Sequence record: PP942979.1 | DNA: 64,000 nucleotides | Direction: 5' to 3' (one strand) | Shown: piece by piece, positions 43,057 to 59,383 of the stretch | How positions within the stretch are numbered: position 1 is the stretch's first letter | Layout of the letters: each line of letters begins with the position of its first letter | Notes under the pieces: generated by a model | The model's database searches: none | Told to the model about the DNA's origin: nothing | What the model saw: the letters and a program-made list of their open reading frames with translations, nothing else | Position numbers and translations under genes: made by a program

Positions 43057-44664
43057 ATGGCACGTATCGAAACTAACACTAATCTGGTTGGCAAAACTAT
43101 CGTTCTGCTGGACGGCACCAAAACTAAAATCGAAGATGCAATCGCGTCTGGTTATAAAGTGAAGGGCCGTTCAACGAAAGTTGCAACTCGCTGTGTTATC
43201 AAAGAAGGCTCTCACTTCCGCGAAATCGAACGCATGAACATGAGCCAGCTGGAAGATACTGGCGAAGGTTACGTTAAGCTGAAAGAAGCGAAAGCGTCAG
43301 GCAAGAAAACTGCCGTCAAGAAAGAAGCAGCTACGTCGAAAGCGTCGGGCAAGAAAGCTGGTGGTAAAGCTGCGGCGAAAGACGCGAAGCCGTCGAAAGA
43401 CAAAGAGCCGAAAGTTCGTCGTAAATCTTCCGAAGAGCAGTCCGAAGATTATCAGAATCTGGCTATGGCTATCATCAAAGGCAAAGCCAAGCCGGCTGTT
43501 GAAATCGAAGCTGTTGACGAAACGCTGACCGATACTGTCGCCAAACGTATTGTCGATCACGTTCTGTCGTCTGATATTGCGCGAGTGTGCGCTGACAACA
43601 AAACGCCGATCGCTAACGACCTGGACGTGACGTATGAAGCCGAATACGCGCCTGAAGGTAACGTGATTCAGATTACGATGAACCTGCAATACGCCGCGCC
43701 GGTTAAAGTGCTGTCTCGTCCTACGCTCGAAAACGCAGAAGCTATCGAAGCCCGTGCGCAGAAGATGATCGCGCCGAAGCTGTCTAAGAAACTGGCGAAA
43801 GCTATTCGTGAAGCATTCAGCCTCGAAGACGCTAACGAGCTGGAAGCCGGTACCATGCTGTTGTCTGATGGTGCTGAGTTCGTCTACTACGGCGAATCTG
43901 CGAAGCATCTGGGCAAAGCGCTGTTGTATGTCGTAGAGACCGACAAGTTCAAATCTGTTCTCGGTTCTACGCTGGGTGAGTATGAAATCCCAGACGCAGA
44001 AGAAGAGGAAGAAGTAGAAGACGAAGAGGAAATCGAAGAAGAAGAGGAAGAAGAGGAGGAAGAAGAGGAAGAAGAGGAAGAAGAAGACGGCGAAGAGGAA
44101 GATGCCGAAGAATCGCAAGGCGCCGAGTATGAGTTCGTCGCTGTCGAAGCTGACCAGCTGAAACTCGTCAACAAGAAAGTAACAGCGAAGTATCACGCCG
44201 CTCTGGCAGAACGCTTCGGTGTTGACGAAGAAGCGCTGGCCCCTGGCCTGATGTTGACTGACGGCGAAACTACTTTCGCTTACCTCGGTTGCGATAGCAA
44301 AGGCGGTCTGCTGGTGATTGACCTGTCTGACGATGCGGACGAAGACGACAACGTGCTGGTCTACAGCAAAGCCGATATCAAAACGCTGACTGACTTTAGC
44401 CCTGTGATTGACAGCGGTGAAGAAGAAGCGGATGGCGAAGAAGAAGAAGACGACGCCGAAGACAATAACGCTGACTTCGAAGAAGAAGACGCTGACGAAG
44501 AAGAAGAAGAAGACGAAGACTTCAACTTCGACGACCTGCCGAGCGAAGATCTGGAAGACCTGTCTGACGACGAACTGCGTGACCGCGTAGTCGAAGCCGG
44601 CCTGACCACTCCGCGCAAAGCAGACAAAATGAACGCGTCTCAACTGCGTAAGCTCCTGAAATAA
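43057..44664 (+). CDS. Acidic low-complexity multi-module protein (535 aa)
   Basis: GAGGAG RBS; small N-terminal domain, Lys-rich linker, two homologous modules, poly-Glu tracts and a C-terminal two-helix module. Confidence 0.85.
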   Translation: MARIETNTNLVGKTIVLLDGTKTKIEDAIASGYKVKGRSTKVATRCVIKEGSHFREIERMNMSQLEDTGEGYVKLKEAKASGKKTAVKKEAATSKASGKKAGGKAAAKDAKPSKDKEPKVRRKSSEEQSEDYQNLAMAIIKGKAKPAVEIEAVDETLTDTVAKRIVDHVLSSDIARVCADNKTPIANDLDVTYEAEYAPEGNVIQITMNLQYAAPVKVLSRPTLENAEAIEARAQKMIAPKLSKKLAKAIREAFSLEDANELEAGTMLLSDGAEFVYYGESAKHLGKALLYVVETDKFKSVLGSTLGEYEIPDAEEEEEVEDEEEIEEEEEEEEEEEEEEEEEDGEEEDAEESQGAEYEFVAVEADQLKLVNKKVTAKYHAALAERFGVDEEALAPGLMLTDGETTFAYLGCDSKGGLLVIDLSDDADEDDNVLVYSKADIKTLTDFSPVIDSGEEEADGEEEEDDAEDNNADFEEEDADEEEEEDEDFNFDDLPSEDLEDLSDDELRDRVVEAGLTTPRKADKMNASQLRKLLK

Positions 44665-44752
44665 GTTCGACCTGTAATACAAAACACTGATGATAGATGC
44701 GGTTCAGACAGAGCCGCATCTCTGACAACTAAGCTGATTGAGGAATCACACT

Positions 44753-57470: not shown

Positions 57471-57728
57471 ATGGACTTCAATATAGCTAATCTGTCTGAT
57501 GGTACTCAGATCCGTTTTCTGGACATGCCGTCTATTCAACATACGCCGATGACTGCCGATCAGCAGGCTGAATATGACAGACTGATTCCGAAGCTGCGTG
57601 AACTGTCAAAGGATTGTATTGTGTCTGCGCACACTGTAGTTGACGGCCAGCCGCATGAGCGTGTGCTGGTGCAGATGAGGCGAACTATTCTCGCTAAGAT
57701 TAACGCGATTGCCAAAGGGGAACAGTAA
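57471..57728 (+). CDS. Hypothetical protein (85 aa) between the topoisomerase subunit genes
   Basis: GGAGG RBS; TAATG coupling to gyrA. Confidence 0.7.
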   Translation: MDFNIANLSDGTQIRFLDMPSIQHTPMTADQQAEYDRLIPKLRELSKDCIVSAHTVVDGQPHERVLVQMRRTILAKINAIAKGEQ

Positions 57729-59383
57729 TGGCAGTTAAGCCGAAGAAAGTTAAAGTCGAAAAGAAATCGACTGCGGTAGCGAAGCCTGCAAAGGTTAAGT
57801 TGAAGTCGAAGTCGAAAGCTGTTGCTGTCGATGACCTGCCGAAAAAGAAAAAGAAGAAAGGCGAAGTAGTTGAGACGAGCACAGGTACTTCACTGTACCC
57901 GATGCTGGGTCAAGACGAGTCTCTCATTCGTGACGAGAACCTCGCCGACTACACACGACGCGCTCTCTTCCAGTACGGCTCATACGTTGTTGAAGACCGT
58001 GCTATCGCTGACTATCGTGACGGTCTCAAGCCTGTGCATCGTGCGCTACTCTGGTCGCTGTCTGACTTGGGCTTACGTCCAGGCGGTGCGTTCAAGAAAG
58101 CTGCACGTACTGTTGGTGATGCGTTAGGTAAGTATCACCCGCATGGTGACGCTGCTTGTTACGGTGCGATGGTAACGATTGCAAACACAGTGCCGCCTGC
58201 TGTAGCGGGTCAAGGTAACTGGGGTGACCCGGTAGCACCTGCCGCTGCGATGCGTTACACCGAAGCGAAAATGAGTAAGTTCGCGGGTAGCTTCTTGCTT
58301 GACCCTGACTATCTCGAAGTAACGCCGATGGTGGATAACTTCTCGAACGATATGAAGCTGCCACTGTATCTGCCTGCGCTGCTGCCGTACATGCTGTTCA
58401 ACGGTAGTGTGCCTGCGCCAGCATATGGCGTTAAGTGCGGTAACCCATCGTTCAGCTTTACGTCGGTTGCGAAAGTCGTGTGTGATATGCTTAACGGCAA
58501 AGAGTACACGGCTAAGAAGCTCGCTGAGACACTCAAAGTCAATCATGAGTATGGCTGTCTCGATGTAAGCTCCGACGAAGATTACCTCGCGCTGATGACG
58601 ACAGGCAAGGGTAAGGTCACATACGAACCGCAGATGAAGGTCGACGAGAAGACGAAGACCATCACGATTCAAACGTATGTGCCTGGCGGCATGTCGAACA
58701 ACGCAGCGATAACCAAGAAGCTGGAGAAGATTGCAGAGTGGTCTGGTGTTGTGTCTGCATCGAATGCCAGTTCGAAGAAGAACAAGGACGCAGGTCCATG
58801 GGGCGCAGCGTTTGCTATCAAGTGTCGCGGTAGCGAAGACCAGTTGTATGAGATTGCGACCAAGGTGCAGCGTGAAGTAACCTCGTCAATCAACTACGCG
58901 CTGGGTGTGACAGTTCGCCGTGCTGACGCATCGAACAAGTTTATGTACCTGTCGTATGTGAACTACTTCAAAGCGTGGGTTGCATATCGCGTCAAGCTGG
59001 AAGTGGCGATGCTCAAGAACAAGATGGCCAAAGCAGAGAAAGCCTTACATCTGCAACAGGTCTACTTGTGGGCAGTGGACAACATGGACAAGTTGCTCAA
59101 AGCGCTGCCTAAAGCGCTGGTGGCAAAAGACCCGGACGAGACGCTTGCGAAGCTGTGTAAGATTCCTCAGGAAGATGCGAAAATCATCCTCGATCGTCAG
59201 GTGCGTAAGCTGGCCAAACTGGAGCGCGCCGGGCTGGTGGCCAAGATTAAAGAAATCAAGGCCGAGATTGCCGAGTATAAAGCCGGTCTGAAAGAGCCGG
59301 GTAAATATGCAGCAAACGGTACAGCGGCTAAAGTTAAAGCGTATCTCAAGTCTCCCGACGACAAGATGCCTGTAAGTCTCTGA
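57728..59383 (+). CDS. gyrA: Type IIA DNA topoisomerase subunit A (GyrA/ParC-like), lacking the C-terminal pinwheel
   Basis: RAIADYRDGLKPVHR, KKAARTVGDALGKYHPHGD and AAAMRYTEAK (catalytic Tyr); 551 aa. Confidence 0.93.
   Translation: MAVKPKKVKVEKKSTAVAKPAKVKLKSKSKAVAVDDLPKKKKKKGEVVETSTGTSLYPMLGQDESLIRDENLADYTRRALFQYGSYVVEDRAIADYRDGLKPVHRALLWSLSDLGLRPGGAFKKAARTVGDALGKYHPHGDAACYGAMVTIANTVPPAVAGQGNWGDPVAPAAAMRYTEAKMSKFAGSFLLDPDYLEVTPMVDNFSNDMKLPLYLPALLPYMLFNGSVPAPAYGVKCGNPSFSFTSVAKVVCDMLNGKEYTAKKLAETLKVNHEYGCLDVSSDEDYLALMTTGKGKVTYEPQMKVDEKTKTITIQTYVPGGMSNNAAITKKLEKIAEWSGVVSASNASSKKNKDAGPWGAAFAIKCRGSEDQLYEIATKVQREVTSSINYALGVTVRRADASNKFMYLSYVNYFKAWVAYRVKLEVAMLKNKMAKAEKALHLQQVYLWAVDNMDKLLKALPKALVAKDPDETLAKLCKIPQEDAKIILDRQVRKLAKLERAGLVAKIKEIKAEIAEYKAGLKEPGKYAANGTAAKVKAYLKSPDDKMPVSL

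Follow-up and report, generated by a model that had tools for sequence, protein, structure and literature searches.

What could be the task, in a large phage, of a run of uncharacterised genes whose products are among the most strongly charged in its genome and which stand directly ahead of a type IIA topoisomerase? The question is raised by positions 43057–59383 of a 64,000-nucleotide stretch of DNA (the window, to whose full length all coordinates refer unless they are given as those of the record). The window is the final 64 kb of PP942979.1, the 261,824-bp genome of Erwinia phage phB78 (genus Alexandravirus), a phage of the fire-blight bacterium, and the 16.4-kb region matches that record at 100% identity. 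In the phB78 annotation all genes from 43057 to 55317 are labelled 'hypothetical protein' and two topoisomerase II subunits come next; the names g304–g319 used here follow the phB78 locus tags. An earlier sequence-only reading of the window had proposed that acidic scaffolds, H1-like basic proteins and topoisomerase form a chromatin-like or phase-separated replication compartment, an interpretation that the present analysis partly supports. We tentatively read g304–g315 as a clade-specific, replication-phase module of DNA-organising polyelectrolytes that may work with topoisomerase II. The observations concern the composition of the proteins, their modular paralogy and predicted disorder, the co-conservation of the genes and their linkage to topoisomerase, and the promoter-like signals; that the proteins bind DNA, that acidic and basic members interact and that there is any compartment or phase separation is what we infer.

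Charged proteins and their modules

All genes from g304 to g318 lie on the plus strand. Three very acidic proteins, beginning at 43057, 48154 and 52837, had been noticed within about 11 kb, and both their coordinates and their charge hold. The first, g304 (43057–44664), comprises 535 amino acids (aa) with an isoelectric point (pI) of 4.3, 26% aspartate and glutamate (D/E) and a net charge of −74; its acidic tracts of 35 and 14 aa make it a block polyampholyte. The largest, g309 (48154–51162), has 1002 aa, a pI of 4.05, 24% D/E, a net charge of −198 and a longest acidic tract of 38 aa. The smallest, g312 (52837–53634), has 265 aa, 47% D/E and a net charge of −97, and features an N-terminal helical part, a Lys-rich patch, a tract with 94% D/E at residues 127–196 (DNA 53215–53424), and an acidic C-terminal tail of 25 aa with a conserved DEDFDDE motif. 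This tract had been put at more than 70 residues; by the criterion used here it has exactly 70, and the contiguous net-negative block of g312 extends to 99.

Interleaved with the acidic proteins, as had also been seen at first, are three basic or Lys-rich ones that begin at 44753, 52143 and 53851 and have pI values of 9.9, 10.1 and 10, respectively. Of these, g305 (44753–46018; 421 aa, 14% Lys) contains Lys-rich linkers and is a partial paralogue of g304, and g311 (52143–52688; 181 aa) consists of a conserved β-rich core with Lys-rich tails at both the N- and the C-terminus. The third, g313 (53851–54399), is 30% Lys and 30% Ala and carries about 10 copies of a 27-nucleotide (9-aa) unit of Lys, Ala, Pro and Glu (54031–54349), within which 15% of the residues are acidic. 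The repeats are accompanied by a coiled-coil-like N-terminal region (aa 1–55) and a conserved acidic-aromatic tip, EDFDFE. Short acidic-aromatic motifs of this kind are conserved in three places, namely at the tip of g313, ahead of the C-terminal module of g304 (DFNF) and in the tail of g312. Among all phB78 open reading frames (ORFs) of at least 100 aa, g312 ranks first in acidity and g313 first in Lys richness, and three of the eight most acidic lie within these 11 of 262 kb, or 4% of the genome.

The proteins had been said to share folded modules with each other. Profile–profile comparison with hhalign, using alignments of seven orthologues, bears this out for the pairs g304/g305 and g304/g312, but g309, g311 and g313 have no significant link to other proteins of the locus by the same method. 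The first ~58 residues of g304 and g305 are homologous (hhalign probability 96%). A 45-aa helix-loop-helix module has a single copy at the g304 C-terminus (44530–44661) and two copies in g312 (53074–53208 and 53422–53556), with probabilities of 97.5–98.6%. Another module, X, is duplicated within g304 (93%), and g305 may have one copy of it at its C-terminal end (65%). An internal repeat was found in g309 (96%). On these alignments g304 and g305 are predicted to be a paralogous pair of opposite charge, acidic and basic members of the locus being partial paralogues of one another. A divergent g312 homologue (Logan contig SRR6324131_3456, 5777–6709) contains four 45-aa modules with a poly-Glu tract after each. 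The unit of module plus acidic tract is therefore multivalent and expandable, being present twice in g312 and four times in the divergent homologue.

Structure models of the two larger acidic proteins were obtained with AlphaFold2 (AF2) and are of medium confidence. The g304 model (36 sequences, mean predicted local distance difference test score (pLDDT) 70) begins with an all-β barrel at residues 1–75, a disordered Lys-rich segment at 78–128 and a middle domain. These are followed by the α/β modules X at 227–310 and 365–445, with disordered acidic tracts at 314–354 and 454–491, and by a C-terminal helix-loop-helix at 504–534 (helices 504–513, 519–524 and 527–534; pLDDT ~92) that corresponds to the 45-aa module. 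The g309 model (26 sequences, mean pLDDT 62) comprises an N-terminal α/β domain, confident helical modules at 276–634 with low-confidence acidic segments between them, and an α/β domain at 670–990 followed by an acidic tail. The domains reach pLDDT values of 80–93, and the segments below 50 coincide with the charged tracts.

A Foldseek search of the PDB gave no significant match for the model of g309 (best E 0.17) or of g304 (best E 0.97). The g304 list consists mostly of SH3-like barrels of the Tudor, PWWP, KOW, CPH and WYL types, all non-significant, and we use it only to describe the class of fold. Among these barrels are the Tudor domains with which UvrD and Mfd bind RNA polymerase, with target-normalised template modelling (TM) scores of 0.35–0.52. 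In BFVD the g309 model matched the orthologue of phage JA29 (E 1.7e-48) and three shorter uncharacterised proteins (E 4.5e-05 to 5.7e-03), namely S5WKD4 of Pseudomonas phage PaBG, I1TQG3 of Lu11 and A0A1C3NF43 of NCTB. Two 50-kb pieces of PaBG contained no topoisomerase and no match to the profiles of the locus.

Gene order, topoisomerase linkage and promoter-like signals

The order g304–g318 is kept in the phages Alexandra, Y3 (Sasquatchvirus), Yoloswag, pEa_SNUABM_5 (Rivsvirus) and JA11 (Salmondvirus) and in Yersinia phage fHe-Yen9-02, and the conservation spans Erwinia, Dickeya and Yersinia hosts. In Y3 the orthologues of g304–g315 are gp315–gp326. Charge character, gene length and order are conserved in six named genera at 25–90% identity, and pI and charge fractions stay near constant as identity drops to 25–35%. 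Twelve of the genes (g304–g309, g311–g313, g315, g316 and g318) also occur in one order in 20 of the 20 IMG/VR metagenomic loci recovered with the g311 profile, and the more divergent Logan contig that encodes the four-module g312 homologue keeps g308–g313. The synteny across related jumbo phages that a functional unit of the kind first proposed would lead one to expect is thus present. The g312 orthologues of the IMG/VR loci always have two modules and 44–49% D/E, with a longest tract of 53–81 residues. Since the length of the tract varies and its D/E content remains steady, selection seems to act on charge rather than on sequence; composition and multivalency look selected, and the sequence and length of the tract appear to drift.

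The topoisomerase genes follow at once. The product of g316 (55448–57469) matches the Pfam families DNA_gyraseB (2.3e-27), Toprim (2.3e-09) and DNA_gyraseB_C (GyrB_C; 1e-07), and that of g318 (57728–59383) matches DNA_topoisoIV, the topoisomerase IV subunit A family (5.7e-59), which identifies the two products as the B-type and A-type subunits, respectively, of a type IIA topoisomerase. Each subunit starts with a Lys-rich tail (aa 1–13 in g316 and aa 1–46 in g318), in agreement with what was first noticed in the translations, and the character of these tails is conserved across the clade. As in the topoisomerase II of phage T4 type, the B-type and A-type subunits are encoded in a DNA-metabolism block; unlike in the T4 type, both subunits bear Lys-rich N-terminal extensions of 13–55 residues. 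Distant phage homologues align from about residue 27 of g316, the Lys-rich extensions lying outside the alignment.

An outgroup comparison is provided by Achromobacter phage Motura, whose topoisomerase B subunit is 56% identical to g316. Directly upstream of its topoisomerase genes, Motura encodes a 268-aa Lys-rich protein of pI 10.2 and a 295-aa polyampholyte made up of an 80-aa Lys/Ala-rich block, a β-rich domain and a 110-aa acidic tail. The tail contains Ser and ends in a motif of the same kind as that of g312. Directly downstream is a 153-aa protein with a g313-like build. By analogy, this trio appears to tie charged proteins to topoisomerase beyond the clade.

The locus sits within the DNA-metabolism strand block of phB78 and outside its virion block, and three classes of promoter-like signal were distinguished. 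In the early type, a CTGGACAAAAT element is followed after a few bases by sigma-70-like −35 and −10 hexamers. The window contains 11 such elements (between 1328 and 55341, for example at 28110), all of them on the plus strand, against 2.5 expected. Two tandem sites of this type (42706–42997; elements at 42706 and 42952) lie upstream of g304 on the plus strand and another (55331–55360, plus strand) upstream of g316, and the same arrangement also precedes g319. Downstream of g309 there is an intrinsic-terminator-like hairpin (51174–51197, plus strand) with a 10-pair stem, six G–C pairs and a T-rich tail.

The second signal, ATCTGTAAA, is found 25 times in the phB78 genome, always co-oriented with the local genes, and typically lies 19–66 nucleotides upstream of those for DNA polymerase I, a polymerase fragment, the clamp loader and primase, and likewise upstream of the sigma factor gene, a ParB-like gene, the Dam methylase gene and others; for DNA polymerase, clamp loader, primase and sigma factor the distance is about 40 nucleotides. 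Seven copies are present in the window, where 0.64 are expected. Five of them form a cluster on the plus strand (51210, 51510, 52050, 52725 and 52781) that flanks g310 and places two copies before g311 and two before g312; a sixth (59387) lies just 3' of g318, and the seventh is at 3077. The positions are kept in all relatives. This distribution makes ATCTGTAAA look like the promoter class of the replication (middle) genes in this phage group. As a separate observation, an extended motif, CTGTAAA-N3-TAATTGAAG, is present upstream of g311 and g312 at 52077–52095 and 52783–52801; TAATTGAAG itself occurs only twice in the genome, on both occasions before these two genes.

The third signal, GCTAATTT, is a candidate late promoter motif. 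It or close variants of it stand upstream of the capsid, sheath, connector and other structural genes, and there are 12 copies in the structural block (record 62–166 kb, minus strand). The other strand block has three sites only, of which one precedes the portal region; the motif or a close variant lies at window position 5708 (record 203532). The locus has none. We read g304–g309 as probable early genes and g310–g312 as likely members of the replication-gene class, and the presence of early and replication-class signals counts against a late structural role.

Resemblance to known systems and competing explanations

The basic proteins had been compared with bacterial H1-like proteins. The likeness of g313 to AlgP, Hc1/Hc2 and the tails of mycobacterial HU lies in its Lys/Ala/Pro-rich tandem repeats and basic pI, and the composition (30% Lys, 30% Ala in repeats) stands as described; the coiled-coil-like N-terminus, the 15% of acidic residues in the repeats and the acidic-aromatic tip set it apart. 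Neither g313 nor six of its orthologues match the Linker_histone or Hc1 families of Pfam at E values up to 0.1, and among PDB profiles g313 is best matched by a ribosomal protein, in an extension rich in Lys and Ala (E 0.0012). As judged by these searches, the likeness is compositional and not homologous. A lone phage H1-like gene does have precedent, because Hc1-type genes were reported in other large phages in a 2025 metagenomic study (PMC12619734). In PaBG, the gene PaBG_00302 of the non-structural block encodes a 139-aa protein labelled 'alginate and motility regulator' by the depositors, and is a candidate AlgP-like protein.

For the acidic proteins the comparison had been with histone chaperones and DNA mimics, and here the long D/E tracts bear the comparison out but no such family or fold was found. 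Like nucleoplasmin, nucleolin, prothymosin-α and the HMGB1 tail, g304, g312 and the Motura protein combine D/E tracts with Lys-rich blocks, and the tracts of g304, g309 and g312 (35, 38 and 70 residues) are encoded beside polycations. Unlike nucleoplasmin and NAP, the three proteins have neither the fold nor the family of these chaperones, and their folded parts are orphan modules. For DNA mimics of the Ocr/ArdA type there was no functional match in Pfam or PHROG and no significant Foldseek match in the PDB.

The 45-aa module, predicted as short helices around a basic loop (pLDDT ~92), can be compared with the SAP, LEM and HeH (helix-extension-helix) motifs, which tether DNA or chromatin, and with the Rho N-terminal domain, from all of which it differs in that its helices are strongly acidic and in that 1–4 copies stand between polyacidic tracts. 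Sub-threshold matches to LEM, SAP and Ish1 (E 0.013–0.042) were seen in 6 of 21 copies. Foldseek gave no significant match for so small a unit, and the arrangement of modules between polyacidic tracts was not returned by any database search of this analysis.

The sequence-only reading had also set its proposed system apart from the chimallin shell, and with this the annotation agrees. No chimallin, tubulin, PhuZ or multisubunit RNA polymerase is found among the 322 annotated features of phB78, as annotated by the depositors, so that any system at the locus would be distinct from that shell. A means of organising replicating DNA in a jumbo phage would be common to the locus and to the phage nucleus of the Chimalliviridae; unlike these, phB78 has an annotated sigma factor and belongs to a group of jumbo phages akin to the Pseudomonas phages PaBG and Lu11 (PMC7412058). 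Its annotation further lists a single-stranded DNA-binding protein (SSB), a UvsX-like recombinase, DnaB, primase, clamp loader and DNA polymerase I.

If g304–g315 are indeed a DNA-organising module, it would be made before the virion genes and partly alongside the replication genes. The polycations g313, g305 and g311, together with the Lys-rich tails of topoisomerase, would bind DNA non-specifically. The polyanions g312, g304 and g309, as block polyampholytes in which repeated small folded modules stand between long D/E tracts, might buffer, bridge or concentrate the basic proteins through their charge and the shared modules. The outcome could be a dynamic chromatin-like or coacervate-like state of the replicating phage DNA and topoisomerase II. 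A stronger form, in which polyacidic scaffolds and polycations co-condense with DNA into a shell-less, membraneless replication factory that recruits Lys-tailed enzymes such as topoisomerase II, is in our estimate quite unlikely.

Several results weigh against the proposed DNA-organising module. Pfam, NCBIfam and the PDB yielded no meaningful match for any of the proteins g304–g315, and neither sequence nor fold searches placed any of them in a DNA-binding, histone, chaperone or other characterised family. The 45-aa module has no match at the gathering threshold to the SAP, LEM, HeH, Ish1 and Rho_N profiles. The folded domains of the Motura proteins have no detectable homology to g311 or g305, which leaves composition and position as the basis of the parallel with Motura. 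Further proteins of high charge are encoded elsewhere in the phB78 genome, and the promoter classes are defined by the position of motifs.

Other explanations have to be weighed on the same evidence. One is that the barrels, the 45-aa module and the DF(D/N)F tips serve as adaptors or tethers that dock topoisomerase II, the replisome or host RNA polymerase, with the charged tracts acting as flexible linkers or entropic spacers and with no chromatin-like coating or condensate. The conserved acidic-aromatic motifs of g313, g304 and g312 would fit such docking, as would the Tudor, PWWP, KOW, CPH and WYL barrels, UvrD and Mfd included, in the Foldseek list of g304 and the promoter-like element common to the locus and the replisome genes. 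Every fold match of g304 is non-significant, however, with E of at least 0.97, linkers would not need 44–49% D/E across genera or tracts of 53–81 residues, and g313, the most extreme polycation of the genome, is hard to accommodate; we regard this explanation as rather unlikely. It is also conceivable, if unlikely, that the locus serves host takeover or counter-defence. The polyacidic proteins would then be DNA-like decoys that soak up nucleoid proteins, restriction enzymes or DNA sensors, the polycations would displace proteins of the host or compact its nucleoid, and the linkage to topoisomerase would be incidental. Acidic DNA mimicry is a known phage strategy, and the early-type promoter-like sites ahead of g304–g309 and the extreme negative charges (−74, −198 and −97) are in keeping with it. 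Known DNA mimics are to our knowledge compact folded proteins, however, and not 70-residue D/E tracts. No match to a DNA-mimic family or fold was found, the signals of g311 and g312 are not confined to early ones but include the replication-class motif, and twelve genes in strict order across Erwinia, Dickeya and Yersinia hosts would be unusual for counter-defence cargo.

Jumbo phages pack many internal proteins, and the products of the locus might be internal head or ejection proteins, the polycations neutralising the packaged 262-kb DNA and the polyanions acting as core or scaffold-like fillers. That the terminase and portal genes share the strand block of the locus, and that the head gene cluster holds an acidic protein with the bulk composition of g309, speaks for such cargo. 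Yet g309 is unrelated to that protein despite their equal bulk composition, none of the locus proteins falls in a structural PHROG category, and the late motif, which is found 12 times in the structural block and also ahead of the portal region, is missing from the locus. The structural block moreover has Lys/Ala-rich ORFs of its own, one of them with a late-type motif, and we consider a virion role improbable. The 14 abundant virion proteins of PaBG are for the most part tail and capsid proteins (PMC7412058). Very improbable, in our view, is the idea that these genes are unrelated orphans with no common function, their composition arising from slippage of GAA/GAC and AAA/GCT repeats and being tolerated rather than selected. 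The tracts are indeed tandem repeats at the DNA level and differ in length between strains; against this, the sign of the charge, the gene order and the modular paralogy are conserved down to 25–35% identity and also in the outgroup, and 4% of the genome holds the most basic ORF together with three of its eight most acidic ones.

How a quarter-megabase genome is organised, protected and untangled where there is no protein shell is not described for large phages in either of two reviews of 2026. The terms condensate, phase separation, histone, acidic and disordered are absent from the jumbo-phage review of that year, the phage section of the viral-factories review deals with the chimallin shell and early vesicles only, and in the literature searched we found no description of an acidic-basic-topoisomerase block. 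The locus offers a compact, conserved set of candidates with opposite charges, multivalent modules and charged enzyme tails. If its charged proteins do organise DNA, they would be a bacterial-virus counterpart, built from orphan folds, of histone/chaperone or condensate organisation; if the compartment form were true, it would be a type of replication factory previously undescribed for phages. Should their role instead be that of virion cargo or of host decoys, the locus would still be a clean case of selection on charge and not on sequence.

Neighbouring genes and further observations

The remaining genes of the block are orphans. Two small ones, g306 (46015–46398) and g307 (46395–46856), are co-conserved with their neighbours, and g308 (46846–48126; 426 aa) is a conserved basic protein. 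An exhaustive phmmer search of 1.84 billion representative proteins found 13 relatives (clusters) of g308, and seven distant ones that were scanned contain no credible Pfam domain. The homologues of g304, g309 and g311 are all inside the phage clade. Nothing usable was returned when PDB profiles were searched with the 45-aa module or with the families of g308, g309, g311 and g313, and the PHROGs of g304–g315 are small families of unknown function, none in the structural category. The coiled-coil-containing protein g310 (51220–52047; 275 aa) keeps its position in the relatives and diverges rapidly in sequence. Two small acidic orphans, g314 (54498–54992) and g315 (54973–55317; 114 aa), precede the topoisomerase genes; in the relatives g315 has 176–254 aa, and some of the longer versions include the 45-aa module in a single copy. 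The small ORF g317 (57471–57728), located between g316 and g318, is variable among relatives.

The block is flanked by two unusually long intergenic regions of ~359 bp (42698–43056 and 59384–59741), both with promoter-like sites and inverted repeats; scanning the 64-kb window, these regions included, for Rfam families and tRNAs gave no match. Further downstream, an ORF at 61009–61551 that weakly matches HNH extends into the beginning of a second one (61484–62353); the 289-aa product of the latter belongs to a PHROG named 'DNA topoisomerase' (1.1e-113) and has no Pfam domain. The annotated SSB, encoded just beyond the window (record 195793–197055), is also highly charged, with 24% D/E and 19% Lys in 420 aa. 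The two Lys/Ala-rich ORFs of the structural block are at record 157740–158417 (225 aa, 27% Lys) and 163630–164364 (244 aa, 18% Lys). They are candidates for packaged DNA-binding proteins, and the first of them, whose upstream region was examined, is preceded by the late-type motif.

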